Source of the DNA: Gnetum montanum
Taxonomy: Eukaryota; Plantae; Gnetophyta
NCBI GenBank assembly: GCA_015680685.1
Contig: MNCI01001992.1
Span: 18,751 to 82,750 of the forward strand
DNA: 64,000 nt
Direction of reading: 5' to 3'
The notes beneath the pieces were generated by a model. That model was given only the letters and a program-made list of their open reading frames with translations. It did not search any database and was not told the origin of the DNA. The translations under genes and the position numbers were made by a program. Of this stretch, positions 5,541 to 59,999 are shown one piece after another. Position 1 is the stretch's first letter; every line of letters starts with the position of its first letter.

Positions 5541-6354
5541 TGATGAGTGGCGAGATACCCCTACACTCAACCATACTAATACGAGCATAGCACGCACGAT
5601 CCAGTCGAACTCCATAGACTAAGTGCCTACACACCCCATGGAACACTTAGGGTTAATCTTCATTGTCTTCCTAGACTTACTTGTAGTTGTCACGATGTAT
5701 GGTTAAGTAAGTCTGAGGTATATGATTTTTATAGCTTTTTATGTTTTTGTCTCCTATGCTAACAAGATGAAGGGTTGAGAAACTAATTACTAACTCTAAC
5801 TAATGAACTAAGTCTAAATTACCTAGCGTCAGCATCCATTCCCGCTTACCGTACACACCCTGAACCGATGCAACCATGGTTACCAAACGCTAATCGTTGT
5901 TGGGATCACCACACGTAACGCACGTGCTCGAAGTGGTCGTACTTAGGCACTTAACCAGGAGAGAAGGGTGAGAGAGAAAGCAGTAAATAACAGATAATAA
6001 ATAATAGTTAAGAAAATCCTAATTAGCCTATTCCATGCACTGCAAGGTTTATCCAAGAAGCTCGTCTTTATTTCCGTACACAAACTTGTGTTTAGGTACA
6101 ATGTCTGCTCGAATAAAGATCCATTCACTTTAGGACTCCTACTACGGGCACATGGAAAATATTCTATCTCTGGAGTGATCAATCTGCCAGAGTTTCCATA
6201 CTATCTAGCCTAGGATGAAGAAATAAGGGAGAGCCGCCTCTTATTTATAGATATGATGGCGCACCACGATATTGCAGGGGAAGACACGATATCACATACG
6301 CGATATCACAAGGGATGCAATATCGCAGCCCATGCGATATATCGCGTCCCATCA
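5541..6354 (-). repeat. 5' LTR of the minus-strand element (814 bp)
   Basis: TGAT...ATCA termini, TATAAATAAGAGGCG box on the minus strand, reverse-complement homology to 9897-10717, adjacent PBS. Confidence 0.9.
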
Positions 6355-8838
6355 GTGTGCATACATTTTAGGTTGCTAAACATGACAACATTTAAGGATT
6401 ACTTTCTGTTGCCATTTGTTGACCAAGTCTTAGAAAGAATCATAGGGCATCGCTATTATAGTTTTTTGGATGGCTATAGCGCATACAACCAAATACAAAT
6501 AGCCCCAGAAGACCAAGCCAAAACCAGGTTCACTAGTCCTTGGGGAATGTTTGCATATAAACAAATGTCATTTGGCTTGTGCAATGCCCTTGCCATGTTT
6601 CAATGCTTAGTTCTAAGCATATTCCAGCAGCAAATAGGAAATGGCGTGGAATTCTTTATGGATGACTTCTCCACTTACAGAGGAAGTTTTGATCAAGCCT
6701 TGGACCGGTTAGAGCAAGTGCTAAAAAGATGTGTAGAAACTAATCTAAGGCTCAATTGGCAAAAGAGTCCTTTAATGGTCCAAGACGGCGTAGTAACTGG
6801 GCATAAAATTTCACATGCAGGGATAAAGGTAGACCCTGAAAAAATCAAAGTCATCCAAGGAATTACCCATCAACCAGAAACTATCAAAGACATTCGGTCA
6901 TTCCTTGGACACACTAGCTACTATAGTAGATTCATAGAGAACTTTTTGAAGGTTGCTAAACCATTGGTAGAGTTAACGAAAAAGGACATACCCTTCGAGT
7001 GGACTAGGAAATGCGAACTAGCTTTCCAAACTTTGAAACAGAAGTTGGTGGAAACACCCATTCTACAAGCTCCTAACTAGTCCAAACCATTCCATGTCAT
7101 GACTAATGCATCCAACTATGCTTTAAGAGTTGTGATTACATAGTTAGATGACCAGAAATGCCCTTATTACATCCACTATGCAAGTAAAAGTATAGCTAGT
7201 GCACAACTTAACTACACTACTACAGAAAAAGAATTAATGGTTGTAGTGTTTGCACTAGAAAAATTTAGGCACTATGTATTGGGGTACAAAGTATTCATAC
7301 ATACAGATCATAGTGCAATTCAGTTCCTCATGAATAAGCCAATGGTAAGCCTCCATATTATATGATGGCTGGTAATCCTACAAGAGTTTGATTTGACAAT
7401 GATCGATTGCAAGGGCACCAAGAATGTAGTTGACGATCATTTATCTCAGTTGCGTTGGGACAGCAAAGAGGACGAGTATCCAATTTCAAGTCATTTCCCT
7501 GATGAGTTCCTCTTTGCCGGTGTAGTGAATAATTAATCACCCATGGAGACAAACTGGTATGGTAGTATTCTTACCTATCTCCTTACCCAACAAACACCAC
7601 AAGAGATGGACCTTAGGAAGAAATAACAGTTTCTTCATAAGGCCAAGTACTTTATGGAGATCAATGGAAAACTTTACAAAGTATGTCCTGATGGCTTGGT
7701 TCGATGGTGTGTTCCCGATAGAGATCAACTAAGAGTTCTCCAAGATGCTCATGAGGGCCCTTGTAGGGGTCACTATGTTGGGAGATGAACAGCTATTAAA
7801 ATCCTGTTTGTAGGGTATTATTGGCCTACCTTGTTCTGGGACACCCATTTATTTGTCCAATCTTGTGAGTGTTGTCAACGTGATGGGGGAATAACTGCTA
7901 GAATAGAGGGTCTGCAATAATGGATTCAACTATTAGAACCCTTCGACATTTGGGGAATTGATTTCGTGGAGCCCATTACACCAATGTCCAATGGAAAATC
8001 TTACATCATAGTTGCCATAGACTACTTAACCAAATGGGCTAAAGCAGCTACTATTAAAGATTGCACATCATCTACAGCTACAGGATGTGTTCAACAACAA
8101 GTTGTCAACAAGTTTGGTGTGCCACGTGCACTTATCTCAGATAATGGTACACACTTTATAGGTGCAACTTTTCGAAAGTCAATGCAACACTTAAGGGTTG
8201 AGCATAAATTGACTACACCATACCACCCCCAAGCAAATGATCAAGCCGAGGTCACTAACAGGGAGATTATGAAGATACTAACTAAAACCATTTGCAAGTA
8301 TAGGTGAGATTGGAGCACTAAGCTGAATGATGCTCTTTGGACGTACCGCTCCACATGGAAACTCCCTATAGGCTACTCTCCCTATGAGTTAGTGTATGGA
8401 AAACTTCCAACACTCCCTATCCAAACTGAGCTCCATACACCAGCCACGACATGTGACCTCAACCTTGACCTTGATCTAGCACAAAAGCAAAGGTTGATGA
8501 CTCTTAACTTGCTAGATGAGAATCGATTGGATACCCTGTCATCTAATGAGTTGCACAAGGCATTTAATAAACAATGTCATGACCTAAAAATTAGGAAAGT
8601 TAAGTATCAACTAGGAGATAAGGTCCTCTATTGGAACCCCACACATGTATCACAATGTACCAAATTTCAAACACTATGGGAAGGACCTTACATCATCTAT
8701 GCAACTTTTCCTTCAGGAGCCATGACCATATATAAACCTGAGAGCCCAAATAAAAGACTGCTAGTCAACGTGCAACAAACAAAACCTTTCCATGAATTTA
8801 GAATAGCCAAAACATATGCTACCTCTATAGGTGGGTAA
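6355..8838 (+). pseudogene. pol pseudogene (RT, RNase H, integrase)
   Basis: ORFs 6253-7080, 7966-8307 and 8392-8838 are joined by in-frame stops. C-terminal WEGPY integrase motif. Confidence 0.9.
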
Positions 8839-25547: not shown

Positions 25548-25949
25548 GTACGTTTGTTATGCTTTATTAGAGTTTTAATGCCTTTCTTAGTTTGACAGTT
25601 TAGAGTTTTTATTGGAAGTATGTTGGAGTTAATGAAATAATAATTGCTTTATAAATTCATTTCTTTACATTTCATACAGGTTGGAGCATCTGTCTTTATG
25701 GGCTCAATTATTTATCTTCACCCTTGATCCTATAGCATTAGAGCTTCACTTCCAAATTGATCTGTTTGTAATTTTGACATCAAGACTTAGTTTTTATTCT
25801 TCCCTTGATGCAACTTAATGTTAGAGTTCAGCTTCCTCCTTTTAACTTAACTTTGTGATTAAGGCTTGGTCGTAACAGCTTTTGCGTTGGAGTTCAGATT
25901 TTAGCTGCTATGCTTCCTGACTGTTTAAGCATTATAGTGGACAACGATC

Positions 25950-28020
25950 TTTTTCGGATGGTTTGTACAAAATGACATCCAAAATTGGTCAGTATCCTTA
26001 AATACAAAACCAGGCCGGTTACTATACAAAATGGTCTTTCAGAAAGGTATAGACAAAGGGAAGATAACATCTTCCTGTTGGAAATATACAGGAAATACAC
26101 AAAATGGGAAATTTCCTCTGCCATCTGGGGGAGAGCGCATAATCGGTGCGATGCTAGTGACTAAACAAGAGGGAGCCCGTTTTTTAAAGAGAACTTGAAG
26201 AACAGATACAAGCGAAGCAATGTAGGACAAACTTATAAATGCCTATGGGAATCACATGAGGTAGATAGGGTAGTTCATATTGTGGACCAGGGCAATAATT
26301 GCCCTATTCTTAATCCTCTGCAAGACTTCATATATGGCTGTGACAATTTTAAATTATTCTGCTACACGTGGATTTTTCTTAGGGTGGAGGGTGTATGTAG
26401 GTTTCTTAGCTTGCTTCGTGGCCAGCTCTTTCTTAGCGATGCATTCCACTAGGTTCATCTCAGGCTGATTTGTGTTGTTCTCATTCACAAGTTCTATGTT
26501 GGCTTCATTCTCATGTCATCCTCCTCATTGGTTGTGGGGGAGGGGGGGAGGAGGAGAGGTTGGTCCCTTATATATTTTTCATTGTTGTCCTCCTAAACCG
26601 GCCTTGATATGGAAGGGTTCACACCTTCAGCCAGCTCACCTTTGCTTCATTGAGTATATTCTCTTGGCATGCCATCCTCTTGTGCTCCCATGCATAAGGG
26701 GATCTTTAGCCTCAGTCTATTTTGCTTTGGTAGTTGTCTAGTCTTTTGGAGTGAGAAACCTTCTGTTTTGTCAAACCTTCACATTGAGCTTGTTGTGAGA
26801 GCTCTATCCTTCTAACCCTAGAAGAGGATGGATGCTGTGACCTCTGAAAACTTGGGACATGAGCATGTATGGTGTTGTCCCATAGAATGGATGTTGCCAT
26901 GTTCCATAATGCTACGAAAAGATTGGACTGGCTGGTTGTATTCTTCTTCAAGCCTTGAAGGAAGAAATTTGAGAGGTTCATTGTTTGTCCATGTTTTATA
27001 CTTTTGAGAAAGGTGAAATTTAGCTCCTTGAGCATAGAACCATTGCTTAATTGTATGAAGTATCTTTTGTTTTTGTGTTTGTGTTTGTTTTTTTTTTATT
27101 TTTATTTGTGGAGTGGTCAGGTTATGTGAGAGTGGTGGTATTCAAAACCACAACGACCTGCAATGGAAGGTGGGATTCAAAACCGCTATGACCTGCAATG
27201 GAAGGTGGGATTCAAAACCGCTATGACCTGCAATGGAATGTGGGATTGCAACACTTGGCAATTAGCACTTCTGGGGGCATTTGGTAACAAAATCAACGAT
27301 GTCATGCATTCCATGGCATGTTAGGACAAGAATTTTCCCATCATTAGGGATCCCTAACATATGCACCATTGTGTCTTAGTCAAAGAGTATTTCTCTTCCC
27401 TTGAAAATAGTGCTATATCCTCTCTAGTTTCTAACAAAGGGGGAGGAGTTAATGTCTCTATTCCCATGAATTCACGGTAGTAGTTTTGCACATCCTGCAT
27501 TTGTGATTGACAACCAAAGCATGCCATCGTCCTGAAATCTGGCAACATTTGGTTTGAATGTTAGTGTTATTCCCATAACAATTGTGAGCTCTGCCTAATC
27601 ATAGAGATCTTGGCTAGCAATAATGGAGGGGAGGGGCAAATGATTCAAGCCATCAAGCATGACATCTGGTATAATGGTTTTGACAACATTTTTAACTGCA
27701 TTGTTGGTAGTTTGATCATGATGATCATTAAAATTTGGCACTGGTGATAGTTTGTGTATTCTTACTTGGTGATCTGGGCATTCATAAGCAGTGCAATATG
27801 AGTATGACTACGATTGCCAACAATGTTAAAGCCTTTAGTTAGAAACCCGATGGAAGTATCCAAGATCACTACTGCTAGCATGCCACAATTATGGATGCAA
27901 TTTGTGTTTATCCTGCCCATGCTTGTGCCCCTTAATGAATGCCATTTTCCAAATGAGGCTGCCCAATAGTAGAAACAAGTAGCATGAAAATAAGAATCCT
28001 TACCTCCCTTGCTTATGTGA
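25950..28020 (-). mobile_element. LINE copy A: old 3' fragment with PMD-like domain and partial J-domain
   Basis: Hand translation: PFVRN*RGYSTIFKGREILFD*DTMVHMLGIPNDGKIL, then YFIQLSNGSMLKELNFTFLKSIKHGQTMNLSNFF, then KKPTYTLHPKKNPRVAE*FKIVTAIYEVLQ. Boundaries approximate. Confidence 0.7.
27141..27245. repeat. Tandem repeat, 35 bp x 3
   Basis: TTCAAAACCGCTATGACCTGCAATGGAAGGTGGGA head to tail without spacers, inside LINE copy A. Confidence 0.92.
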
Positions 28021-34349: not shown

Positions 34350-35340
34350 TTTTTTTTTTTTTATAAATTTGAGAAGAATTTGGGTTGTCATATTATAAAC
34401 ATTTCCACATGATCATATGCACACTCGTGAACAAAATTGGGGAAGAAAGACCCCCTTTATGCACAGCCTGTTGTGGGGGGTGCACGGGCACGCGGGGGCA
34501 GGGAGATGGTGTGGGGAAGAAGAACCCCCTTGAGTAACAAGGTAGCCGAAAGACCCAAAGGGGCAAAGCCAAAGACCCCATTCCCATCAAATTCCAGACA
34601 TAGGCCCAACCTAACAAAGACTCAAAAATAGCAATGTGCCATACTAGGCACTAGACTCGTATTGATGTAATACCTTTTCAACCAAAAACAGTTTAGGCCT
34701 GAACCTAATGAACCAACGAAATGGAAACACCACAAACGCAACAGCGGGCCAAAGGCCCCCACTATCAATAGCCAACTCTAAAGCTATCTTGGTAGCCTTG
34801 TACAAGGGTAGATAGTCTGTTCTTGGGCATGAATGACATCCAACACTGCTCGATGACACACTCTCACCACAAATGTTGTAGCTTTTTGGAATTCTTTGTA
34901 TTTTTCCTCCCTATGCATGTGTTCAACATCATTGCTAGTGCCATCCAGGTGAAGCTTGGTTGCAGTCCTCCTTATGTACCTGCGAGGGCGGGCCAGGCAG
35001 TGTTGTGATTCACATGCACAATCACATATAGGCATTTGCCTTCTTGCAGCCAACAGTGTGAATTGGCATCATGGGTTTTGTCTATTGCTGTTGCAATTGC
35101 TTTTCCTCAAGTCTATCCTTCTCCTTTTGCTCCTACTTGGCAGGCTCCCTTTCCCTGTGTTCTTGTTCTTCCCACCACAACTCTTCCCTGATCTTCCTAG
35201 GCAGATCATCTTCTCGTTCATTTCTGATGGCCACCTCATGCAGTTCCCTTTGGGGTTGGTAGGGGTGAATGTTGTAAAGTTTTCATCCAACTGTTCTTAT
35301 GCTATTTCCTTTCTTTTTTGTGTTCATGGAGCAGATATTT
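34350..35340 (-). mobile_element. LINE copy B: 3' fragment with coiled coil and J-like domain
   Basis: Poly(T) at 34350-34362. WLQEGKCLYVIVHVNHNTAWPAL/RYIRRTATKLHLDG...REEKYKEFQKATTFV. Confidence 0.75.
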
Positions 35341-35362
35341 TTGTTGGTAACAACTTGTTTGA

Positions 35363-36037
35363 TTGAGAGATGATTGGGTTTTGTATTAGTATTGGCATCG
35401 AACAGTACAAAACAGGGTGTCTATTAGATGTGTCAAAACTTGGGCAAAATTAGGTGATCATGGACCGTACAAAAAGGGGCCATGCCACCATTCACTATAC
35501 AAAATCTAGCAGCCCACCTGCACTCCACCTTTTAGCAATATATAACCACCCAAAATAATGGACTAAAAGATATAAAACACTCCTCCCCTTGGTGTGAGCA
35601 AATCCAGGGAGCTATCCCCCTCCCAGTGCAGGGACACAGAACTAAAGACTGAAAATATACCATAGATGGCAGTCCCCAACCCAACTACTAAGGGGTGCAG
35701 TGTGCAAATGAAGAAGCATCAATTATGCATGCAGGCGACGAACTTACTTTCCTCATCCTTCTGCAGAACATCATAGATATTTGTGAGCATTTTGAACGCC
35801 ACTCTTCCTCCTCGGCTCTTATCTGGGTGGAAGGTTTTGGAGAGTCTTCTGTAATTTTGTGTGATTTCTCCGATGCTGTCTGTCTCGTGAAGCCTAAGGT
35901 CTCAAAAGCCCAATTTCCAGAATTAAGGATCCTATTCCTTACTGCATTTTACATATCAGCTTTCTTCTCCTCCAAATTCTTCAGAAGCTCATTTCCAACG
36001 TGTGTTGTAGACTGGGGCTGCTTCCTTCTCTCCCTCC
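35363..36037 (-). mobile_element. LINE copy C: 5'-truncated insertion encoding a J-domain with intact HPD
   Basis: Identical 18-bp TSD TGGTAACAACTTGTTTGA at 35345-35362 and 36038-36055. RILNSGNWAFETLG/LHETDSIGEITQNYRRLSKTFHPDKSRGGRVAFKMLTNIYDVLQ with one frameshift. Confidence 0.8.
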
Positions 36038-36545
36038 TGGTAACAACTTGTTTGAGATAGATGTGTTTTAACAGTTTATGAGGCATGTTAGTCTTATTGA
36101 TTACTCTGGGAAATGATAGTACCAATTATTTTTTGATGATAGTCAGTTATTGTTATAAAAAGCCTTGGTATTATAGCCAAATTTGCGTTGCATCCTCAAT
36201 ATGAGTAGATAAAATACTTGTTTTTTTCAGCTCTTGTGCGTACATACTATAGTGCATGAAATAACCCTGAATTGACATTACTGAAAAATACAACACTTGT
36301 TGCCCCAAGTTAAAAAGATAGGTTTAGATGTTATGCGGTTGCTGGCATATTGTTTTTACTTTGCATGGAGAGAACTCTTGTATCATATTATATCTTCACA
36401 TTTTAAAATTAAAATTATGCAAACAAGTAGTGGGTTATATCTGGTTTTCTTACAAGACGTGAATGTAAGCAAAAACAATGTCTCAAGTTAACTTTATTCC
36501 TGTCAATATGAAATTTAATTATCTGTTTTATTTTATATTTTGCAG

Positions 36546-37815: not shown

Positions 37816-40800
37816 GTCAATTATCTAATTGAGGTTCTGCTTAGTTCTAGCTATAATCTCTTTGCAAGGAGATTAATTGTTCTAGGATTGTCCTTCCAAA
37901 AATGTCCAATCCTATAGATCCCTCGCAGTTTAGACCAATTGGCATTTGTAATACCTTGCTCCAAGTATTTACAAAAATGCTGGTACAACACATGATCCTG
38001 CTAATGCTGTGCCTTGTGGGAGCACATCAGGCTAGCTTCATCAAAGGTAGGTTCTTATAGGATTAGCTAATTCTACCGCAGGAGGTTCTTCATTTGCTGC
38101 AGATGGCAAGGTTACTAGGAATGTGTTTGAAGTTGGACATTACGAAAGCTTATGATATTGTCAGCTGGGAAGCATTATTTGAGATCATGATACGTAAGGG
38201 GTTTAACTCTAGGTTTGTGTATTTATGCATTTAGTTATAGGCATCAAGAGCATACTCATTCGACATTGGGGGTAAACTATGGGGGTTTTCCTTCCCTAGC
38301 TGAGACTTCTGCAAGGAGATTTGCTATCCCCATTACTGTTTATTATAGCAATGGATACCCTACAGATGTATTACAAGTTGGAAGGTGTTTGAGGTTTGGA
38401 GATCGCTAGGGTGGAATGTCTAGCAGAGCATTATGTGGACGATATCATGCTCCTATTGTGGGTGGCGGTCCCGCAAGCTCAGGCAATTGATTGAGCTCTT
38501 CGCAAAATGGCCCTAGAGGTGGGCTTAGAGATTAATAGGGGAAAATCCACCCTTCATCGACTCAACACTAATGCCTACATTGGTAGCAGGATATCTTAGA
38601 TCTTGGGGGTTCTCTGTGGTATTGCTCAAGACTCATATTTAGGTATGCCCCTCTACAATTGGGGTAGGAATTAAACTTGGTTGAACATGATCTAGAAAAT
38701 GTAGAACTGGATTGGACATTGGTCAAATCGATTCCTCACCCAAAAAGGATGGGTCATACTTGCCACCTTAATGTTGGTGGCCATGGCTCTCTTCATGGCA
38801 TTGGGGGCCTTCCCCCCCATAGGTACTATATTGAAAGTAATTAGAGACTTTATTTGGTCCCCTGNNNNNNNNNNNNNNNNNNNNNNNNNNNNNNNNNNNN
38901 NGGTAATCGCATGCATCTAGTATGTTGGGATACTACTGCTAGACCAAGGGAGGCTAGGTGGCTTGGAATTCTCAAATTTCAAGATAAGATTACAATGGGA
39001 TACTAGCAGCTTACTAATCGAGTCTTGTAGCATGATGAGGGGACTGCCTAATGGATTCGTATTATGTGCAACAAGTAGCAACAATGAGAGGCGGATACCC
39101 ATGTTTCACCAATCTAGCACAATCTCTGCAAGCATGCACATGATATTATGCGGGGGGATATGTTGGGGGTATCACCATGGGAAATTATTAAAGCTAAGTA
39201 TCCTAGAATTGAAGGTTGTAGAGCATACGGAATGGTAGAGTATTAGAAAAGTTAAAGGTGTTTATTTGGCTGGTAGGCCACACATGGCTTCCGGTATGTC
39301 ATGGTTCTTCATGCACGAGGCTTGAATTTTAATCATTCCTACCCATTATGTATTGACACCCTTGAGACCTTAGCTCACTTTATGTATCCGTGTCCATTCA
39401 TGGTGGACACCTAGCAAGTTGTAGCTATTCCAACTCCAATGAATTTAGATAGTGACTCCAAGGTGATGATGGTGCTTTGGTCATTTTGGAAAACCAAAAA
39501 TAGTGCAATTTTTAGGGCTCTATGACCTCCATCGGCATAGGTTGCGGCAATTGGATTCCGTTTGTGGAGGGAAGCTTCTGCTACCATGGGAGTGATGCCT
39601 ACTTTTGAATCATCTTGTGTAGCCTACCAGGCAAACTAGGAGCTTTGGAGGCTTGTCGAACGAGTTAGGTGGGCTGATGTCCTTCCCCTATTAGAGGGGG
39701 ACCATGACTTGGTAGATGGCCCTTTCTTCTCCAATTGGGTTGGTGAGTTTACTTCTTTTCGTGGCATTTGGATAGAGCTCATGAAGGCTTCCTTGCCATG
39801 GTATTTGGGCATCTTGGCAACAGAGGAGACTATCCTTCCCATTGGTCATGGATTGCAGGATGCAAAAGGCTTCTTCCAAAGATCGGTAGTGGCTAGGTGC
39901 CGAAATCGGCATTACGACAACTGTGGAAAGACATGGCAGAGCTCGTTGATTGGTTCTTGGTGCAATCGAGGAATGTATGGAAACTTCAGGGCATACACTT
40001 CACTTTGTTGAAGTGCATGCGCTTGGGTTAGGGAATCAATCTCCCAAAATTTTTTCTGGCTACACTTTGCCAACAATGACAAGGCTGCCATTTAGGCCTT
40101 ATTTTGGCATTGTGGTGGGCCACCACACCGGTTATTCCTCCACCCCAAGGGTTGGTCGTTGTCCAGCTGTCTATGAGCATAGATTGGTGGGCAACAGGAG
40201 TGTTGCCCCAACCTTAACCCTAGATTTGATGTCGATGCCACCATTGGCATAGGCCCAAGTCATGGATAGCTCGATGGTTTAGGGGGAGGAGTTGGAGGGG
40301 TTGTAAGAGACATTAGGGAAGTCTTCTTCCCTAGCTCAGCTCGGTTAAGAGCTCGAACAACGTTTCAATGAGGGCTTGCAATAGAAGACCAAGGAGGTGG
40401 CTGAATAGGCGAGGTGGGAAGAGCGGTTCTTGTGGGAAGCCAAATGGCTAGCCTAGGAGGAAGAATTTCAGTGGCTTACAGCCCAGATGGAGATGTGGCA
40501 CGTTGACAAGGAGAAAGAGCTTTTATAGAAGTGGGACCTACAAGAAATGGTAGCTAGGGCTGCGTTGATTGATGAATTGTGCATCCAAATCAGGATGGAG
40601 CTGCAACAAGAAGAATAGCAGAGGGCGAAGTAGGAGCAGGTAGAGTTATAGGCCAAGGAGTAGTAGGAAGAGGTCGAGTAGATGCAACGGCAATAGGATA
40701 AGATGCATGCAAATAGTGCCTAACTTTGGTTACAAGATGGCAAATGTCTATATGTCATTATGGGCATCAACTATAACACCTTTTGGCTAGCTTTGCGTTG

Positions 40801-41366
40801 ACATGTCAGGTGCATGGCTGCCAAACTTTACCTAGATGGCAAAGGAGATGTTGTAGAATGTGCATGGAAAGAGGTTGCCTTCAAGGAATTTCAATAGGCG
40901 GTTGTGTTTGTAGATACTGAGCATCATCGTGACATTCTCCAAGTGATACATTGCTAGAAATGCCATGCCTGCCATTGTAATAGGCTCCCCAAGAGACTTT
41001 GGAGGAGTGGGTCCTATGGCTAATTGTACCTGCTTTTCTTAGTCTCCTTGTTTTTGTCAGTTTCTCTTTTGGTCAGTGGTAGCAACTGTTTGTAGTTCCC
41101 TGTTATGTTGGTCCTTCCCATGGAGTCCCCCAGATATGGGGACAGTTGTCCTTGTCTATTTTCTATACCTTGTTTGTCAGTTTTCTCTTGGTCTTAGAGG
41201 TCCCAGGGCATAACATAGTTTGCGGCATGACGAGAGGGGAGAAAATACCCCCTCTATAAATGGGGGTTTCTCACCCCCAAAATAATTTTTGACTGTACAT
41301 AAACTGTGATCTTTCATTAGTATAATCCTGAACTTTCTCTCAACAAAATAAAAATAAAAATAAAAA
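37816..41366 (+). mobile_element. LINE copy D: 5'-truncated; RT, zf-RVT, PMD-like, coiled coil, J-like, 3' UTR
   Basis: FRPIGICNTL, LKLDITKAYD, HYVDD, FWKTKNSAIFR, then PFFSNWVGEFTSFRG, an E/R/Q-rich tract, and CLYVIMGINYNTFWLALR*HVRCMAAKLYLDG. (A4-5T)n tail. Candidate TSD TTCATTTTGTCAATA / TTCATTTTATGAATA. Contains a 37-N gap at 38865-38901. Confidence 0.85.
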
Positions 41367-45449: not shown

Positions 45450-46402
45450 GTGGGTGGGTTGGGGGAGGGGTCTAGGTTTGATTGGTAGGAATTTGTCACC
45501 AACTAGTTGTCCAATGTGCATGAGCAGGTTATGCTGGCTTCCAAAGCACTCCACTGGGAGCTGTAGGTGAAATATGAGGACCTTGCTAGGGTTACCACGG
45601 AAGTGGAGGCTAGGGTGGGTGTGGAGGAAAGGGTTACTTGAAAGGTGGAGCTGCAAAAGTGGGAACAAGAGCAACAACTACATGCTGAGCAAGAAGAACA
45701 ACGTTGCATGGAGGCTGCCAAGGAGGAAAAGCACCAGAAGGACCTCTAGGAGGCCACCATCAGGAGCGAATTGGAGGATGCCTTGCGTGAGTAGACAAAA
45801 AAGGAGATGCACAAGGAAGAGCACGAGTGAAAAAGAAGGGTTGAAGAAGAGGAATAGTAGGCCAGAGACCTATTGGAGGCACAACAAATGAAGCGAAGCT
45901 AGGATGTTGTGCGTGAGTCAAATGCTCATCGCTGGCTGCAAATGGGGCACCACCCTTATGTCATCATGGACATTAACTGCAATACTGCTTGGCATGCCTT
46001 GCATCGATTCGTTCGGAAAATAGCGAGCAAGCTACATCTTGATGGGGTTGGGGGAGTCGAGGAGAACATGCAATGGGAAGAGCAATACAAACAATCCTAG
46101 GAGGTTGCTGCTTTCGTCACTTCTGAACATTAGCGGGTGGTCCTAGATGCCATCCACGCATAGGAAAGGGCTTACGACCCCTGCACAAGGCTGCCAAGAC
46201 CTCTTTAGCATTGTTTTCTAGGTGGACAATCAAGATCTCATGAGGGAGTGGACATGTAAGTGTGATAACATTCAAGAGAGCCACATGTCCTCTATTAAAT
46301 GAGTCCATTGCCCCTTTTCCTGCCATTAATATGAAGTGGACAATTAGCATATTTAAAAAAACATACATCACCCTCTCACATTGACTTTTCTTGTGGCCCC
46401 AT
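45450..46402 (+). mobile_element. LINE copy E: 3' fragment with coiled coil and J-like domain
   Basis: E/K/R-rich tract then WLQMGHHPYVIMDINCNTAWHALHRFVRKIASKLHLDG...WEEQYKQ (ORF 45909-46100). Left boundary approximate. Confidence 0.75.
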
Positions 46403-46414
46403 CTTTTTGGCTTG

Positions 46415-49400
46415 TTTTTTTTGGAAAATGGTCAGGCTAGATAAATTAATAATAATAAAAATATGTGCAATTAGGACCTAGATCAAAAAATAGGGGAGAC
46501 ATCCCCCCTGGGGACTTAATCCTCGAACACACCACAGTGCCTAGGGACCACCCTTAGGCCATTGGAAAGCGTGAAACCATCAAAGCAAAATGGGCCCCTA
46601 AAATAGGCCTTCTACGACATACTGCATTTGGCTAGGAAGCATTCGAGAAGCATGAAAACAAACCAATTGAAAAAAGATAAGTAGAGAGATAGATCAGAAC
46701 AGGAACTGAACAAAGCCAATCAACCGACACCCCAAAAACAACCACCCCCCAAAAACTCAACAAAAAACCAAAACAACACTCCATTACTCATGGTGGGGTA
46801 GGCTGGAGTAGGCACATCTAGGGTGCACCCTAGAGTGAACCTAGTCAAGAATTTCCCTTTGTTGTTTAGAGGTCATAAATGTTGCAACCTATTGGAACTG
46901 AATGAATTCCTCTTCCTTCCATTGTCTCTCCTCTGTAGGCTGATTTTTCATTTTATTTGGATGGAACCTAGTAGCAACTGATCAGATGTATTGTTGCAGC
47001 GTGGCCTATGACACATTCCTATTGATGCTATAATTATTTAGGGGTAGCATCCCTTCAGTAGCCAATGTTTGGCTTTCGACTAGTGAGCCTGATCAAGCTG
47101 CTTGCTCATCTGTTCCTCTTCAAAAGGGCCCTAGCTCTCTATGCTTTGGCTTCTTTCATAGGACATTTCCTATCCACGTCTTCTTGGAGGATTTTCGTCT
47201 TGATCTCTTGCCTAAGCTCCTTCTTCTCCTGCTAGATACTAGCCTCTTGATGCTTGTGTTGTCTCTGCAGCTCCTCGGCCTCCTCTCGAAGTTGGCGACG
47301 CTCAGCCTAGACCCTTGCCTAAACATCCTATGCCTATTGAAACATAATTACCTCCCATCTAATCCTTTCCTCGTCACGAACCCTGGCCTCCGTTTCTGCC
47401 ATAACCTGCTGAAGTTTGTCTTCTAGATCATTATGCACCTCCCTTCTCCTAGCCTCAATATCCATTGATACCCAAACGCCCCTAGAGGCTACGCTGAGGA
47501 TGACTTCCCAGAAACCCCCGTAGCTAGGGTTGATGATGACAAGGTAGCCTCTTGTAGATGTAGCTTGCAGTAAACATGAGCAAAAGGGATAGGGCGGGTT
47601 GGAGGGTCCAAAGGCTATGTAGTCCACCAAAGGGCCAGAATGAGCCCTGAGTGCTACCCCTTACATTCACGGTGCAGTGACGCTAGAAAGAACTTGGGGA
47701 GATTCACCAGCCATGCATCCCTCATGCAATGCAAGAAGGCAAAGTGAGCCCCTTGCAGTTTCCAAGCGTTGCTAGATTGCACAACGTATTGATCAACTAA
47801 TTTGGCCACCTCTTGCTAGAGGGGAGGTAGCGCAAACTACGGAACTTGCCCACTAGTAGTCTTGGGGATAGGCTCAATGAAGAAACCCTTGGCATATCTT
47901 TGGTCCCTCCCAGTAGGTAGAATGACCTCACTTGACGCTGGCATCCCTAGGTAAGCTACCAACGCTTCCTCAATTAGGGTAATCCGAACCCTTCTAAAAA
48001 TAGTTGCATCCCCCCACCATTACTGAAAGAAACTGCTATGTATGATGTAGGGTTCACTCACGAGAAGCAACAACACTTAAGCCCATTCCATCTCCTTTAC
48101 TACGTCCCAAAGGTACCTCTTCTTATGATACATCGTCGCCTTAGGCTCAAACGTTGACGTAACCCCCATAGCCACTGTTACTTCAACCCATAGTCTATGC
48201 GCTAAGCAAGTGACATGCGTAGGGGTAGGATAAGGTGGGGCACGGAAAGTCTTGGCATTGTGGGCTTTCTAGATTTGCCACAAAACAACAATATGAAAGG
48301 AGTCCCTAGACACATGCAGGGTCAGATTGGTTCGTACTTCAGCCCACACCATAGTAGCTAACAGGCAATGAAGAAAAAGATGAGCCGTTGACTCAGTGCA
48401 TGGGTGACATAATGGACAGTCATCATGATTGATAATCCCCCACACTTTGAGTGACACACATAGTGGTAATGCACCATGCAAAATAAGCCAAGTGAAACAC
48501 TTGATTTTCTTTGGAAGCCACCTCCTCCAGAGACACTTCCAACCATCTTGATTCGGGTATTTGAGCTTGATGGTGTCCTTGGGCGCCTATCCCATCATTC
48601 TTCCTTGAAGCAATTTGTGTGCATGAGCACAAATATTTTGCCACATGTGGGAATCCTTGGGCACTACCACCCAATGCATGTACTTAGAAGCCATGATATG
48701 GGCCCATTGTGGTTTGCTCCTTGAGTCTTGCATTAGTCGATTGATAACAGTTTGATGCCCCATCAAAAGGACATCTTCAAATTTTAGCACCCCTAGGCCT
48801 CTTGCAGCCTTGGGCCATGCCACCGTATCCCAACACACTAAGTGTGGACAGTTTCCACCTTTACCACCAGACTAGATGAAATTCTTGATGATTTGGTTGA
48901 TTTTATTGGTCACCCCCGCAGGTGGAGTGGCAAAAAAGCAACATTGTGGGTAATGGCAAGAAAAACAGAGGAGGTCTAAAGGATCTTACCTTTGTGAGTG
49001 AGAAACCACGTAGTCCAATGACCAACCCATGAAAGGAGTTGGATCAACCATGTCCACATTTTTGTTTTGTTCCATGTAAACATGGGAATACTTAGGTAAG
49101 ACTCATGGTTAGTTCCTGGCAAGATCCCAAGAGATTGACATGCTTGTTGCTGAATTGGTGCTTCCGTGTGGAAAAAGTGCACCGTAGACTTCCACCTATT
49201 TGGTTGTAAGCTAGTTTCCTGTGCCAAATGGTTCAATGCCCGATTAATAGCAAGAGCTTGCAGCACCACGACCCAGGTCATGATGATGGTATCATTGGTG
49301 TAATGTTTAGTAATGCATGTTGTGCCTAGAATTCTGAGTCCTTGAACACCCTCCTCCCTATAGTAAGTTTGCATGGTATCCATAATGATAATAAACAGGT

Positions 49401-52117
49401 AGGGTGAGAGAGGGTTATCCTAGTGTAATCCCCTAGTAGGGGATGGAAACCCCTAGAGTCAACCACATAGATCAAAAGAATAGGTGTTAGTCTTCTAGAT
49501 ATTAATGCAGAGGTGCACAAAATGTTGGTGAATCCCTTTCTTAAGCATGACCTCCCCGAGTGTTTGCCATTGAATAGTATCATAAGCATTTGCAATAACT
49601 AACTTAATGCACATACTAGGGAATGTAAATTGTTGGATGGAATGAACCACTTCTTGTAGCAGGAGAATATGGTCTTGAATGAACCTCCCCTTAACGAAAT
49701 TAGCTTGGTGGGAGCCAATCAAGGTTGACATCAGTGATTGAAGATGACACACCAAATTTTTGTGAACACTTTGAGTAATGTGTTGCACACCTCAATTGGT
49801 CTATAATGAGTAGGGAGAGTGGAGTTGCGAATCTTTGGCAATAAGACAATTCTAGAGCAATTAATCTCCTTTCAAACTTGTTCCCACCTAAGCATGAGAT
49901 TGAAAGTATCTAGCATGTTTTGCTCCAAAACGTCAAAGAATTCCCAAAAGAATTTGATGGACCACTCATCTGGGCCAGGGCTCTAGCAGCCTTAAGTGAA
50001 GCCATAGCACATGAGACTTCCACCATGGAGATGGGGGTGATGAGGGAGATATTGTTGGCTTTGCTGATAACCTTTTGGATTGGAATAGCAAGAAGGGAGG
50101 AATCTCCCTTAATAGATTGTGTTCTAGAAAATTTGTATTTCTTGTGCAATGTCCTATGGTTTATGTAGGCGGGTCGACCCTTTGAAAATGCTATTAATTC
50201 ATTTGCCGTGACAATTAGCCTTGGCCATTGCAAAGAAGAAATGAGTATTTTGATCCCCCTCTTTGAGCCAACACACCTTGGACCTTTCCTTCTAGTATTG
50301 GTCCTCCTCCACATCCAAACTTTGAAGTTCCATGAGCAGGTTATGCTCCTCTTCATCCAAAAGTTCCCCATTTTCCTACTTGGACTAGATGGAAGCCAAA
50401 TGGTGTTGAATTCTACTCCTGGTACCTTGGAAAGAGTACTTCTAGGTCACCTGTAAGGTCTGAATTCATTTCTTTAGGCAATTGAGGCCTTGTTTGAGGA
50501 AGTACCTTGGGTTAGTATTGGTAGTAGGATAGAAAGCCCAAGTATCTTCAACCAATTGACACAACCAACTTTTGGACAGCCATGCTCATTCAAACCAAAA
50601 AGGAGCCAGTGGGTTTTTTTGGGGGGATGGGGGTGGGGTTGGGGGTGTCCAAGGGGGGATAATCAAACAAATTAGCGCTTGGTGATTCAAGGCTTACCGT
50701 TCCCAGCATTGAACCAGAACCTCATATCTAGTGAGTAGTTTGGCATGAACCAAGGCTTTGTCAATGTAGGACATAAGGCCATTGTGGCTACTCCTCCTAT
50801 TGCTCCAAGTGAATTGGCATCCCCTAATGTCAAGATCCACTAGATTATGCCTATGCAAGAATTGCAAAAATCCAACTAAGGTTGTTGGGGAGCTAGTAGG
50901 TTGATCCTCTAAAATCAGAGTTTCAGCAAAGCTTGTGGGGGATGTGGTTTCTACCCTATCATCAGCCAAGGCATTGACATGCAACTCGTGGTTAGTAGAG
51001 GGGGCATAGGGCATTGAGGAGCCATTCCCGGCTTTAGCTCCCATATTCAATTTCTCATTAGAACCTTGGGAAGATGTATTTTCTGGCCTTGTTGGAGGGG
51101 GAGGCAATGGTGACACCTTCTCCTTTTTCCCCACCAGTAGCCACCCACCCTCATCCATGTTTCTTTTCGGCCCTTTTAGTCCCTTCGTGGGAGCTTTAGG
51201 GTGCACTCTACACTCATGAGTATAGTGGTTTGTCTTTCATAGGTTGCGTAGGCCATTTGACGCCCACGGGCTTCATGTCTTGGTGTAGGCTCCATTTGCA
51301 GAACATTATCATATTCCACATTTAAGTGTTCCTCTCCTGAAGGCAAGTTGCATATAACTTCCTTTAGGAGTTTTTTAGGGGATAATGATCCCTACATGCA
51401 GAAGTGGGCATAGCCCATGTGTTCCTTCATTTCAGTGAATTTATCAGAGGAGATAAATTCCCCAAATTGTTAAGCCAAAGTTCTTAGGAAACCTTCTGTC
51501 CAAAGCTCCCATGACACCTTGGAGACTTGCACCCGAACAAGAGTGCAGGAGAACAGCTTGGTTTCCTTATGAGCTCCTGGTCGCCAATACATGAGCACCA
51601 AGCCTTGCACACCCAAAAAACTAGGGCCCCCCCAAAAGGACCCTATCTCTGTCTACAAGCGATTGAAATACAAACAAAAGAAGGTTCCTTGCTAGTGACC
51701 TCACTTGGATTTGGTCAAGGGCCCAAGTAGCAATTGCCCATTTGCTAACAAGGTCAAGCAGAGGCTTGGACCTTGAGGAAACAAAATGGTTAATGAGGCT
51801 AAGCTTCATCATGTGTAGACCCTCCTGGGGAGGGCCCTTGACCGACAACCTCATGGTAGCCCCTTCCCAAACAATGGCATTAATGTCCCCAATGCTTGGC
51901 TGCCAAGCCCCAACCCCCCCATCATTGGGTTGTTGGTCTGTCCCTCGTCTATTGCTACCAGTACCGCTCTCGCCAAAGATGCATGTTGCATCCCCACCTG
52001 CTTTCTCATTAAGGTCCTTTGTGGCCCCTCCACCTTTGTGCCCATTGTTCTCGCTCCCTTTCCACTCCTCTTCCCCCTTGTGCCTGCCACTGCTACTCTT
52101 GCTCATTGCTCTTCTTG
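46415..52117 (-). mobile_element. LINE copy F: near full length; ORF1, partly deleted APE, RT, zf-RVT, PMD-like, coiled coil, J-like
   Basis: DUF4283 (DRDRVLLGGP), FTWSNRR, RT motifs, CPLCHPCTESTAHLFLHC, then LGMPASSEVILP and YI*SVATRFHPNK...KEEEFIQFQ*VATF. TSD CTTTTTGGC(T/A)TGTTTT at 46403-46418 and 52118-52133. Confidence 0.88.
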
Positions 52118-53479
52118 CTTTTTGGCATGTTTTAAGTCCCTTTTACTTTATAAACTAAGAGGGTTTCTAATATATTTTTGGCTTTTAATCTATTTTCCAT
52201 GTTTACTATAATTTATCTAGCAAAAATTATTAATACTAAACTTTTTGTACAACCAACATTTTACACATGTCGAGCCAGTCATAACGAGCATAAACACATC
52301 GTAGCTACCATGTTAGAATTAACATTTTAATCAAATTAAAGAAAATAGGAGCCACAATGTATTTTTTAATCGTCTAACATTAAAATCTCAAAATTTATGT
52401 CTTGAATTGAGACACTAATTATAGATCTATTCTCTATATGTAAAATTGAGTTGGTCCACCAACTTTGAGCGTGATTTGGCAACATTGAATTTTGGATGTA
52501 TTTTAGTTAATTAATTATTTAATAAATTAAAAATTGTAACTAAACACCAAAATACACCATGGATCCACATTATATTAATTTCATACTATTATTCTAAATT
52601 GATGTGTTAGAGTTGTCCATCCTTGTTATATATAAAGCTTAAAATAATAAATAATTAGAAAGAAATTAGAAATAAATAGTAAACTTGTGTATGTCACCGA
52701 ATCAAACGTCTTCATATTAACATTGAAGCGTTAGACACATCTACAAAAATTTATAAGCTTTAAAACAAGTTCAAGCCTTCAAGCCTATGTATTTAAAAGA
52801 GTATTAATGTCACATGTAGTTGTAGTTAGGTTGCAGTAGCTAACAAAACCTCACAAGCTATACCTACATGGCAGCTGATCAAAATTTGAATGCCATGAAT
52901 CGTGGTTGCATCCTGCCAAAAAATTTCAAATAGTATGAGTTGTGGTCTAGTTGGATTTGACTCATGACACTAAGTAAATTTTAAAGACTCCCCGTGGTCC
53001 TCATCGTGATTCGTGGTCAAGTTGTCATATGCAGAAAAATCAATCAAAGACTGAATTCTGAAAAATTGAAGTTTCCACTGAATCACAAGATCCACTGCTG
53101 AACCTACATTTACTTTTTCTGGGGCTGATTTACTGTAACATTTTACTTGTCCTATGTTAACCTCATCCCTTCCCTTTTCCGTTCCTTTAAAATAAATAAA
53201 TAAATAAATGTCCATTGCCTTGCAAATTCTATCTTGAGCTCTAAACCTCATTTATACTATCATGAATTAAGCATCACAAGAGAAAATAGATTATTAATAT
53301 TTTCAGCCCTAATTTTTCTTCTCATACTCAGTCCCTCTTAAGTGCTAGCTTTAAGTTGTCAACCCCAACTTGCTCTTTGAATCCTTGAAGGTGCTCTACC
53401 CATCACTTAGATTTGATTTTATTTAGCAAATTTGGAAGTAATGGTATAAATGTTTCAGTTTTCTCATAAGGGCAGAAAG

Positions 53480-54359: not shown

Positions 54360-57300
54360 GTTTTTTTTTGGAAAATGATTGAGTGATTTTATTCCAAAAA
54401 AATAATGTACAAACGTACACAAAAGATCATCAACCGAAGTTGATACACCCCATCCACATGACCCAATGGTCACCTGCAACGTACCGTATGAACACCTACA
54501 TGCTTGCACAACACAACCCTCTCACCCTGCCCGATGACCCTCACCCCAAATATGCAACCCTTGTCCCCAAGAGCAAGGTACATACATGACACATACCCCT
54601 TGGAATGCCTAGGACCACAANGCTATGGCTGAAAGTCAGGGATCTAGGTCGTAGTTCGTCAAGACCACTGGACGTAGTAGTTCAAGGATAGATGCGAATA
54701 GGTAGTGCTGTGGTCCTAGGCATTCCAAGGGGTATGTGTCATGTATGTACCTTGCTCTTGGGGACAAGGGTTGCATATTTGGGGTGAGGGTCATCGGGCA
54801 GGGTGAGAGGGTTGTGTTGTGCANGCCTATGCCTTGGTAGACTACCCTTGGCACCACCTTCTTTGGTACACGATCGTTGGTGCCAGGTGAACGATTGTAC
54901 ACCCTCGCACCATAGCGCGAGGATCACTCCAGGGTGTTGTCCCAATTGTCTCCTATGAAGAGATTCCTAGAAAAAATGGGGCAAATTTATTGGGGAGCTT
55001 TGCCGAAGGTGCTTGAGAAAAGTGAAATGGACCCCCACCAGTTTGTGGGGGTACCCAGATTGCACAAAATACCTATCCACCAAGAGCGCTGCATCTCTCC
55101 AGACCCCTTGTAATTTGGACTTCCAGATGTGCTCGCTAGCAGTCTTGGGAATGTGTCTTGTGAAGAACTCCTGCGCATCATCTTGAGCCCTCGCAATTGG
55201 TGCCACAATTTCCCCTGCGTCCTTCATCCCTAGTGCAATTGCCAACAATTGCACTGTAATTTCAATTTTCTTGCCCTTGTATTGTGTAGTGTCTCCCACC
55301 CAGTTGTCGTAGAATTGTTGAGTAGGCAGGTTTGGCTCTCCCTCCCTGCGCTTGAGCATCTCCACCCACTCCATCTATTCAACCAACGCCCATAATTCGG
55401 GCAATCTAGCAAATTTTGTCCATGATGGTTCAAAAAGTAGGCGTTGCTCCATGGCCTCCGTGGCCTCCCTCCATAGCCCACATGCCTCTCTAACCACTAC
55501 CATGGCTGTAGGAAGTGGCTGTCCCCGAAAGATCAGAGAATTCCTATGTTTTCACAGGACCCATAGCATAGCCAGGTGCAAGGAGTCTCTGTGGAAACCT
55601 ATGGTGGGGGATATATGTGCAGCCAGCCACACCGCCTAAGAAAACCAACACCCAAAAATGAGATGATGCAACATTTCAGGCACCTCCTGGCAACATGGAC
55701 AGCTGGCATCCATCTTAATCCCCCTCTCTCAATGTGGCCCTCACTGGCAGAGCCCTATGTTTCAGCAACCATTTGAACGCCTTGATCTTTTTCGAGAGAT
55801 GGCCCTTCTAGATTGCAACCCATCCCTCTTCCTGCGGGTATCAGAATTTGACCAGTTCCTTTGGATGCTGCCCCAACAATTCGAGTTGCTCCACCACAAC
55901 AGCATGGCGGCAAAAATTCTTCCAGAGTTGTGAGCACTCTAGATGAACCTCCCATTGCTGATATTTCTGCCACAACATCTACACCCATGACGTTGCCCCC
56001 TCACTTTGCCCCATGTACTTGTTCATCAAACGTTGTGTGCCCAATGCCATCTCGTCTCCAAGTCCCAAAATACCAATGCCCCCTGCCAGTTTGGGCTACA
56101 CTGTAACCATCCACGACACTAGGTGCATTTTCCTGCCCCCTTTACCTCCTGACCACACAAACTCCCTTACAATGCTATCAATCTTTTGCACCACTGTGGC
56201 CAGAGGTGTTGCCATGGATGTTGTAAATTGGGCAATTGCCATTAGGACCGTCATAGGCAACACCATCTTCCCTTTCCTGGACAAAAAATGACTAGTCCAA
56301 AGCATAGTCCGTTGTTGCACCTGCTCTATTAGTCCCTACCATGTCCTCTGCCTATGCCAATCAAAAATAGGCATTCCCAAATATGTGTCATGTGCTTGGC
56401 CAAATAGAATGCCCAACGCCTATATAATTTTGGCCTGCACCCTTCCCCTCCGTGTGGGTGCAATAAATGGCTGATTTTCCTTTATTGACTTCTAGGCCTA
56501 CCTCCTACTACATCCTCTCCATTGCCTGTAACAAGGCCTCAGCTTGCGGCATCATAGCCCTGGAAAACACTGTTGTATCATTTGAATAATGGGCTACTAC
56601 ATTGTGCACTCTAGCAACTTGTAGTCCTTGAACATCTTCATCAAGGCAATAGCCTTTAAACAAGTCCATGACCATGATAAAGAAGAGCGGTGACAACAGA
56701 TCTCCCTATCTTAGTCCACATCTTGTTTCAACAAACCCACAGAGCCTCCCATTAATGTCAAGGGAATACTTGCCACTTTGTTGCATTTGAATGTAGAGAT
56801 TGAAAAACGTTGCATCAAACCCCTTTTCTATCATCACCATCCTAGGTGCCGTCTAGCTCACAGTGTCATAGGCCTTGGTTATGTCTAGTTTGATGCACAT
56901 GCCTAGAAATCTAGCCATCTTAATTGAGTGTAAGATCTCTTTCTAGAGTAACACCTGGTCTTGCAGGTATTGGCCCTTAATGAACCTTGTCTAATTCTCC
57001 CCAACCAGCTTCCCCATCAACGACGCAAGTTGCCCAACCAGTAGTTTGGAGAAAACACGCAACAACGTCTTGCAGACCTCGATAGGTTGAAAATGTCTTG
57101 GTGTTGTTAGGTTTGGGACCTTGGGTAGTAGCACCATCCTTGAACAATTTATCTTTCCTAACCTATTGCCAACTGAGAATACTATTGTATGTATCCAACA
57201 AATTAGGCTCCATGAGATCCTCATACTCCCTAAAGAATTCAATTGGCCATCCATCCAGTCCCAGAGCTTTGTTGGACTGCATGGATTTCAAAGCCCGCCT

Positions 57301-59999
57301 TAGCTCCTCCCGTGAGAAGGGATGCCGCAAATTGGAGTTGTCAGCACTTGTGATTGGCAAGGAGATCGGTTCTGTGGCCTACCATCTCCATATGTCTCCC
57401 CAATAGTTCTGCAATGCATCCAGCCCCCTCTTGCTACTTTGTGGGCCTCCCCCATTGATACCCTCTAGCAAATGCTAGATTTTGTTCTTGTGGGCCCTAT
57501 TTTGCTTGGCTGTGTCAAAGAAGAACCGTGTATGCTTGTCCCCTTTCCGCAGCCAAGTCACCCTTGACCATTGTTGCCAGTAGCTCTCTTCCTCCCTATC
57601 CATCTCCTAGAGTTCTCTAAGTAGCTCTTGTTCTTCAACGTCCCCGGCTGCCCCCATTTCCTGCAACCGTTGGATCTCCCGCAATTCCATCTGCACCTGC
57701 TGTCTGTATCCTTGGAAGCTGTACTTATCCAATGCTCTGGCCTTGACACTATTTTTTAGCACCCGCAAACCATCCCCTAGGAATTGTTGAGGCTCCTGTG
57801 CCCCAGTGTAATTGTCCCAAATTGCCACCACCATTGGTTTCAGCCAGGCTTTGTGTAGCCAAGCCCGCTCAAACTTGAATGGCCTGGGCTCCTGCCTCTC
57901 CCCCAATCGGAGCTGGCATAAAATGGACTAGTGGTCTGAAGCTTGTCTCTCCTTTCCCTCCGTCATGATGTCGTATTCTAGCATGAGGCGCTCACTCACC
58001 CATACTCGATTGATCCTAGACTGGACACGATCAGTGCCCCTCCGGCAATTACTCTAGGTGAATTTACACCCCATGATCTCCAGGTCAACTAGCTCATACT
58101 AACGGAGAAACTTGATGCATGCCTCAGCCCTCAGAGGATTAGCGTAGTCATGTCTAGGTTTTTCCCAGTAATAGAGCTGCTGGTTGAAATCTCCCAGCAA
58201 CATCCATCTGGCAAGATTAGGACCTGTTTGAGCTCTTGCATCTAGATCTCCTAGCTTTGCGCCCCATAAAAATTTGTTATCCAGAGATTCGCTTGTGGCA
58301 TGTGGACAGTTTGACTCCAATCAGAATCATCAACAAAATTGATTGGTATTTTGGCCAGAATGGCTAGACCTCTTGTGCGTCCCCTGCTGGGCACCATTTG
58401 GGTTGTCCATCCCTCCCAGATTAGCAACTTCCTTTTGGTCCTTTGCACCTTGGTTTCCTGTAAACAAACTACCTCACAACCTGCCTCCCTAACCATTGTT
58501 CATAGGGTATTTCTTTTGTATGGGGTACCCTGGCCTTGATAGTTCCAGGTGAGGACCTTTATGGAGATGTAGACACATGTCTGTGATACACTTCCCATAG
58601 CATTTGCGGCCCCCCCAAATCTAGATCTCGTAGTGTGAATTTCTTATACGCTGTGGTTTTACTGGGTTGCCCAATCTTGCTATTTAACCTGAGAACCACT
58701 GCGCCAAGCTGTCCCTCCGCTTGCCTAGGTTGGATGTCCTGCATTTTTGGCTTTGCAGAGCCCTGGCCAACTGTAATCCACTCTCCCAATCGGGGTAATT
58801 CAAGTGCTAAATCCTGCTACACAATAGTCCTGGGAACCAATGGGGTGCGGAGAGAGCTAGGAACCTCCTCCATCTCCTCACGTGCAGATGCCCCCTCAAT
58901 TGTGCCACTGGCTGGCAGCGGCTTTGTAACATCCTCCACTAGTGGCATTATATTTTCCTTTGTCTGCCTTTGCCCATCTCCCCTCCCCATTGCGGTTTGA
59001 CCTTGCGGTCATTTGGCCTGGGGTCTTCCGTCTATCGTGGTACTCGACCCCTGCTTCCATATTTGGTCCTTCTTGCCCATGAGATTCCAGCCCTTAGTGG
59101 CCTCTGTTGATCCTCTGCAGCGCTCTAATTTTGCATGCCATGTGCCACAGGTTTTGCACCTTTGGTGCCCCTCCCTACGCTTTGGCAAGTTTTCAAATTT
59201 TATGTGGATCTTCTCTTCTTCGCCAATGGTGTCTAGCACTACCTCTTTAACTAGATCCGGACAACCTCTTTAACTAGATCCTTTGTCCTTAGCAACCTCC
59301 ACATGTAGAAATGGGCGTAGTCCATTCACTTCATGGACTTTGTGAATGCATCAAATTTTATAAATTCCCTGAACAGCCCCGCTAGAGACTTCAGGAACCC
59401 TAGTTCCCAGTACTCCAGCGCCAGATCAAACAACCGGATCTAGACTAGCGTTTGATCAAACAGACCAGTATCTCAATGTGCTCTAGGTCTCTAGGGGGCT
59501 AGGGCCAGTCCACGGGTGTCGTAAAACCATGGACCCCCTAGCAGCACCTTGTCCCGATCTTCCACCGTTGAGAATGTGAACAGCAGCCGATCATTTGCTA
59601 GCCCCCGAACATAGATGTCCTCCAACCCCCACGTCACTTTGACCCATTTTTGGATCAGATCTAGATGCAGCTAGACTCCCTTTGATATGAACTTGCCTAG
59701 TAAGCTCCGCTCCAGTTTCTGTACCGCCTCCTTTGGCAGACGCCCAACTCGAACCTGCATGACCGCTCCATCCTGCGCATAGGTATCAAGACCAGCACCA
59801 TTCGCCTGACCTTCTATGGCCCCACCCTTACTACCTCCTGCAACAACCGATCCTTTGGCCCCTCCTGCCACCGCTCCCATCACCGTCGCACCCGCTCTTG
59901 GTGCCACTGCTGCTGCCGCTCCTGTTGCTGCTGTTGCTATTGCTGCCGCTCCTGTTTCGGTTGCCGTTCCCAGGCCTTTGGTCTTCCTAATTTTTTGTC
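54360..59999 (-). mobile_element. LINE copy G: near full length; ORF1, APE, RT, zf-RVT, PMD-like domain; 3' part mis-assembled
   Basis: Identical 15-bp TSD TTGCTTAAATCAAGT at 54345-54359 and 60000-60014; poly(A); KVLTWN, VVCLQETK, LLGDFN, IKLDITKAYD, CPCC zf-RVT; ORF 54967-55374. Confidence 0.92.

Follow-up and report, generated by a model that had tools for sequence, protein, structure and literature searches.

Does a J-domain that lies within a short, duplication-flanked insert derive from a retroposed host DnaJ mRNA, or from the end of a LINE? This question was addressed for a 675-bp insert, referred to here as copy C, located in a 64-kb window (the whole stretch of DNA that was analysed). 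The window consisted of repeat-rich DNA that was plant-like and in no respect suggestive of a human contig. It contained LINEs (in which DUF4283, RVT_1 and zf-RVT were recognised) together with Ty3/gypsy pieces, and all comparisons among copies were confined to it. Two Ty3/gypsy pol fragments (1–1700 and 6200–8300) were found in inverted orientation with 60–85% protein identity. The positions of the insert, of its parts and of the related copies are given in Table 1.

Table 1. Positions of copy C, its parts and the LINE copies compared with it in the 64-kb window
Feature	Position	Strand	Remarks
Copy C, insert	35363–36037	minus	675 bp; probable 5'-truncated 3' end of a J-domain LINE
Target-site duplication, upstream copy	36038–36055		18 bp; TGGTAACAACTTGTTTGA on the plus strand
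Target-site duplication, downstream copy	35345–35362		18 bp
Copy C, end of upstream tail ORF	35952–36037	minus	~29 codons, E/K-rich, coiled-coil-like, ...GNELLKNLEEKKADM; helix I frame
Copy C, in-frame stop TAA	35949–35951	minus	between coiled-coil tail and J-domain
Copy C, linker and helix I	35892–35948	minus	NAVRNRILNSGNWAFETLG; frame of upstream ORF
Copy C, single 1-nt frameshift	35890–35893	minus	separates helices I and II; base 35892 common to both frames
Copy C, helix II, HPD loop, helix III, short C-terminal tail	35722–35891	minus	HPD at 35821–35829
Copy C, 3'UTR	35363–35718	minus	356 nt; three TTTTGTA motifs
Copy C, TTTTGTA motifs	35406, 35468, 35498	minus (sense)	TACAAAA on the plus strand; cluster 35406–35504
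Copy A, same subfamily as copy C	25900–27591	minus	tail domain, J-domain, 3'UTR
Copy A, tail domain	26961–27591	minus
Copy A, J-domain	26255–26497	minus	HPK
Copy A, stop TGA	26516–26518		second at 26525–26527
Copy A, 3'UTR TTTTGTA motifs	25966, 26003, 26025	minus (sense)	three
LINE-1	37850–41365	plus	RT, zf-RVT region, tail domain, coiled coil, J-like domain, (AAAAT)n tail
LINE-1, tail domain	39490–40214	plus
LINE-1, stop TAG	40694–40696
LINE-1, J-like domain	40697–40993	plus	YLD
LINE-2	46415–52142	minus	DUF4283-like ORF1, RVT_1, zf-RVT, tail domain, coiled coil, J-like domain, A8 tail
LINE-2, RVT_1 and zf-RVT	49498–49791 (RVT_1); 48272–48586 (zf-RVT, E 2.5e-16)	minus	by Pfam
LINE-2, tail domain	47657–48268	minus
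LINE-2, stop TAG	47080–47082
LINE-2, J-like domain	46796–47065	minus	HPNK
LINE-3	54910–59772	minus	tail domain 54910–55551
B-type LINE tail fragment	34353–35300	minus	5'-truncated; J-like domain with HLD 34787–35106; A13 tail 34353–34365
34.8-kb fragment, stop TAG	35082–35084		followed by a 1-nt deletion
Truncated fragment of the same LINE end	45500–46360	plus	A7 tail at about 46354–46360
45.9-kb fragment, stop TAG	45900–45902
Classical plant L1	11925–16712	minus	DUF4283 ORF1, RVT_1, zf-RVT

The insert and its J-domain

According to the original prediction, the 675-bp insert is bounded by identical 18-bp target-site duplications, and the exact repeat TGGTAACAACTTGTTTGA was recovered on its two sides. 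Even when two mismatches were allowed, only these two matches occurred in the window, where 0.01 18-mer matches are expected by chance. The last four nucleotides of the insert (TCAA) were identical to the first four of the duplication. No terminal inverted repeats were found on the insert, neither BLASTN nor Smith-Waterman alignment detected DNA-level copies of it elsewhere in the window, and its flanks had no usable paralogue in the window for a paralogous empty-site comparison. The 3' terminus of copy C reads ...CTCTCAA, ending in AA only and without poly(A), so that the A-rich or poly(A) terminus by which the L1 type is recognised was absent, while the other LINE copies end in A13, A8, A7 or (AAAAT)n. 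The RNA structure of the 3'UTR was not unusual (z +0.98). A SINE-like unit was also considered for copy C and was rejected because the Rfam and tRNA scans returned no match. About 60 bp from the insert on its 3' side, a B-type LINE tail (34353–35300) was observed in the same orientation. No target duplication was found for this fragment, nor for copy A.

The peptide encoded on the minus strand could be reproduced by translation. As predicted, it is interrupted by one 1-nt frameshift (indel at about 35890–35893), its HPD lies at 35821–35829, and it is missing from the list of open reading frames, which shows just a 27-aa GTG ORF at this place. The helix I frame reads ...RILNSGNWAFETLG at 35892–35942 (minus strand); base 35892 is common to this frame and the one that follows, which leaves one 1-nt indel between helices I and II. 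Downstream, a stop-free piece of 60 aa (DLRLHETDS...FHPDKSRGG...ACMHN) spans 35722–35901 on the minus strand and is followed by TGA at 35719–35721. Comparison of this piece with the Pfam DnaJ family (PF00226) gave 37.9 bits (E 1.9e-9) over profile positions 6–58 of 63, against a gathering score of 27.8, a margin of 10 bits; the J-domain pieces on either side of the frameshift were searched apart. FHPDK occupies residues 24–28 of the 60-aa piece, and the HPD did not vary when the piece was aligned with library J-domains. The helix I sequence NWAFETLG (the ..Y..LG. region) is present, but it is frameshifted from helix II at about 35891.

By sequence, the 60-aa piece matched 19 solved J-domains, the best being C. 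elegans dnj-12 and human DNAJB12, with human DNAJA1 and E. coli DnaJ as further close ones. The AlphaFold model of the piece contained helices at residues 10–24 and 33–59 arranged as a hairpin, with a mean pLDDT of 78. All the Foldseek matches listed were J-domains or chains that contain one, with TM-scores (normalised to the query) of 0.55–0.80 and a best rmsd of 1.0–1.7 Å, at E-values that are weak (at least 0.05) for so small a fold. Because the alignment on which the model was built was itself made of J-domains, the model is biased towards this fold and the structural result is confirmatory only. In place of the usual helix IV (KR..YD), copy C carries ...SKFVACMHN, a part in which the model had low confidence. 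Judged from its sequence, the module in copy C is a real J-domain and not just a weak look-alike, and it is the most canonical J-domain in the window.

J-domain homologues at the ends of LINEs in the window

LINE-1, LINE-2 and LINE-3 have the same unnamed domain, termed here the tail domain, directly after zf-RVT. When the stop-free tail-domain pieces of these three elements and of copy A were searched with Pfam, no match at E 1 or better was obtained; the name PMD/Transposase_32, which had been suggested for this domain, was thus not borne out by any such Pfam match. A word search with a 135-aa tail-domain piece likewise returned nothing at E 0.001 or better. The description of the domain as LINE-specific rests on the three RT-bearing copies in the window. 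The classical L1 of the window stops shortly after zf-RVT, without an extra tail or J-domain, and as it occurs alongside the J-type LINEs, two LINE types coexist in the window. In LINE-3, an inverted duplication (54473–54622/54709–54822) with 96–100% protein identity was observed beside single N positions at 54621 and 54824; a palindrome or an artefact of assembly may account for it.

In LINE-1 and LINE-2, the tail domain precedes a coiled coil and, after that, a terminal domain of about 90 codons, containing KLYLDG in LINE-1 and RFHPNK in LINE-2. The canonical J-domain HMM gave no significant match to the B-type ends (best E 0.32, for LINE-2), and an HMM of the B-type J-like domain did not detect copy C. 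Stops lying in frame within the LINE copies were treated as X in scripted analyses. Profile-profile comparison of the four B-type ends with the J-domain profile gave a probability of 95% (E 3.7e-8) over 59 columns and placed the HLD/HPN of the B-type ends in register with HPD. In all six pairs of B-type copies, pN in the J-like region (0.35–0.47) was below pS (0.74–0.98), which indicates that this region evolved as protein. On these sequence comparisons, J-domain homologues sit at the end of RT-bearing LINEs in the window. LINE-2, whose A8 tail lies at about 46415–46422, and the truncated fragment at 45.5–46.36 kb were seen to end tail to tail, about 55 bp apart.

The architecture of copy C resembles that of LINE-1 and LINE-2 (coiled coil, in-frame stop, J-domain and a UTR of about 350 nt), with no DNA-level alignment to any RT-linked copy. 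A terminal motif, AACCCAA..TC.TCTCAA, gave a marginal result between copy C and the copy designated host34 (p 0.036) and was not significant against LINE-1.

The tie of copy C to the LINEs passes through copy A. The J-domain of copy A matched copy C in tblastn (E 3e-6) and the canonical J-domain profile at E 3.5e-6. The motif TTTTGTA occurred 30 times over both strands of the window, and at least three occurrences within 200 bp were found only in the 3'UTRs of copies A and C (64 kb, either strand). In both copies the clusters are on the sense strand, past the stop by 225–285 nt in copy A and by 215–310 nt in copy C; a rough estimate of the chance of at least three such motifs in the copy A 3'UTR is about 1e-4. 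The cluster may represent a subfamily-specific 3'UTR element of copies A and C. An exact 12-mer, ATTTTGTATAGT, is also common to the two copies, and alignment of the last 200 nt of copy C with copy A was marginal (p about 0.04). Helix III and the C-terminal tail of copy C were no closer to copy A than to unrelated J-domains. The original prediction had tied copy C to a LINE through a likeness of this tail (FKxxTxIYxVLQ...AxxHN) to copy A; the conclusion found support in the other evidence described here, while the tail likeness itself proved no better than that to unrelated J-domains.

The upstream region of copy A matched the post-zf-RVT domain of LINE-1, LINE-2 and LINE-3 in collinear order, and the spacing between tail domain and J-domain was about 490 bp in copy A against about 590–640 bp in LINE-1 and LINE-2. 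Copy A is 5'-truncated, and the window contained no RT-bearing copy of the subfamily to which copy C belongs. Between the tail-domain pieces of copy A, a 35-nt unit was found three times in tandem (27134–27247) with 89–91% identity. As copy C is like copy A, copy A has the LINE tail domain, and this domain is linked to RT in the LINEs, copy C is tied to LINEs. The chain from copy C through copy A and the tail domain to the RT-bearing LINEs is coherent, though indirect.

Origin of the insert

A host parent was sought among known proteins. A word search with the 60-aa piece gave no candidates, and a HMMER search of 1.84 billion representative proteins gave only 17 matches at E 0.001 or better. 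The best of these 17 were multi-J, bacterial CbpA-like or nematode proteins with 29–51% identity over the matched stretches, and the top-scoring ones rank high only through the several J-domains that each of them has. The matches that could be named were CbpA-like bacterial proteins of metagenomic origin, along with J-proteins of nematodes. Pfam detected no RT domain in any of the eight matches submitted to it, and the six whose source was looked up included no plant protein. No close host DnaJ parent of copy C was thus present among the 1.84 billion representative proteins. Had a conserved plant J-protein been retrocopied recently, its family would be expected among the matches at much higher identity. 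A lineage-specific host gene could still have been the parent, yet the results support copy C as a LINE tail fragment and not a host DnaJ retrocopy.

With good probability, the insert stems from a plant LINE of the L1 type in which a J-domain closes the tail of ORF2, and is a dead, 5'-truncated copy of the 3' end of that LINE. A unit that bears a LINE-like 3'UTR at its end and is bracketed precisely by an exact 18-bp duplication shows the classic LINE signature; around copy C, such a duplication is direct evidence that retroposition mobilised this 3' end. In the LINE lineage concerned, ORF2 would run past RT and zf-RVT into the unnamed domain, a coiled coil and the J-domain. The LINE endonuclease would have nicked the target at ...GTTTGA^GATAGA, target-primed reverse transcription would have started from the 3' end of the LINE RNA and ended prematurely after 675 nt, and a staggered second nick 18 bp away would have given rise to the duplication. 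In the active parent, the J-domain may have recruited host Hsp70 via its HPD to the ORF2 protein or RNP, where Hsp70 could serve in folding, assembly or remodelling. Copy C itself is inert: it lacks a promoter context and is broken by one frameshift and one stop.

A processed pseudogene would arise if LINE machinery had retroposed a 5'-truncated cDNA of a lineage-specific host mRNA with a C-terminal J-domain. Copy C shares its target duplication, 5' truncation and decayed frame with processed pseudogenes, and the first two of these are equally expected of retrocopies. Such an origin would also suit the J-domain of copy C, which is canonical where the RT-linked LINEs have degenerate J-like ends, and the absence of any LINE copy that matches copy C at the DNA level. 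However, an mRNA retrocopy is expected to carry poly(A), and copy C has only AA before the downstream duplication. Nor is there an identifiable parent, as no host-type relative above about 50% identity was found in the 1.84 billion proteins and the closest ones are not plant J-proteins. Further, the rare 3'UTR motif cluster is common to copy C and to copy A, which bears the LINE tail, and the coiled coil and in-frame stop precede the J-domain as they do in LINE tails. On balance, a host mRNA origin is improbable.

Insertion at the DNA level, as filler DNA in double-strand-break repair or by another transposon, with the 18-bp repeat produced by repair, would agree with the missing poly(A), and the 4-nt microhomology TCAA could equally be a trace of end joining. 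Against this stand the absence of terminal inverted repeats and the position of the duplication, which precisely encloses a unit whose end is a LINE-like 3'UTR; filler-DNA events, moreover, rarely yield duplications as long as 18 bp. Such an insertion is accordingly considered very unlikely. The possibility that non-coding DNA produced the J-domain match or the flanking repeat by chance has the short length of the piece (60 aa) as the sole point in its favour and was refuted by the Pfam score, 10 bits over the threshold, and by the 0.01 18-mer matches expected, leaving it a negligible probability.

Known systems and the stop before the J-domain

Plant L1-clade LINEs (ORF1 with DUF4283/zinc knuckle; ORF2 with endonuclease, RVT_1 and zf-RVT) are comparable to copy C in retroposition, 5' truncation and target duplications of variable length, and the RT-bearing relatives in the window carry RVT_1 and zf-RVT as these LINEs do. 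The J-type lineage differs from them in adding several hundred codons after zf-RVT, which end in a J-domain, and copy C differs in lacking the A-rich tail of the other copies. With J-domain proteins (PF00226; DnaJ/Hsp40, class C/III), copy C has in common a helix II with basic residues, the HPD loop and helix III, whereas it has no G/F or zinc-finger region and its J-domain would be the C-terminal end of a retrotransposon protein. In class C/III proteins the J-domain can be positioned anywhere. The large T antigen of polyomaviruses provides an example of a selfish element with its own HPD J-domain (HPDKGG), which enlists host Hsc70 for a replication protein. Its HPDKGG can be set beside the HPDKSRGG of copy C, although the likeness is at the family level only, and large T antigen, unlike copy C, belongs to an animal DNA virus and has its J-domain at the N-terminus. 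LINEs depend on host chaperones, and the full-text literature searched contained no description of a LINE or other retrotransposon with a J-domain and no report of a LINE encoding its own Hsp70 co-chaperone module. Confirmation of the family would provide a tractable example of the capture of a host proteostasis module by a retroelement.

An in-frame stop was present 5–11 codons before helix I in all six J or J-like copies of the window, in frame with both the upstream coiled coil and the downstream J-domain. In three B-type copies, which are only 48–56% identical at the DNA level, a TAG precedes the Trp of WLQ by exactly ten codons. Copy C is the least decayed copy, and the TAA is its only stop. 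No conserved ATG was found after the stop among the six copies, although, as the pN and pS values of the B-type copies show, the sequence beyond it evolved as protein. It is conceivable, though doubtful, that the stop is native, such that ORF2 ends there and the J-domain is a programmed readthrough extension comparable to retroviral Gag-Pol and the readthrough proteins of plant viruses; a minority of ORF2 molecules would then carry the Hsp70-recruiting module. The occurrence of the stop in every copy of the window makes control by readthrough a testable hypothesis. Parallel C-to-T decay of Gln codons (CAG to TAG) at methylated sites is a plausible alternative, because among the stops of the LINE copies TAG clearly predominates, as expected at methylated CHG sites. 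In agreement with such decay, a TAG inside the J-like domain was common to LINE-1 and LINE-2.
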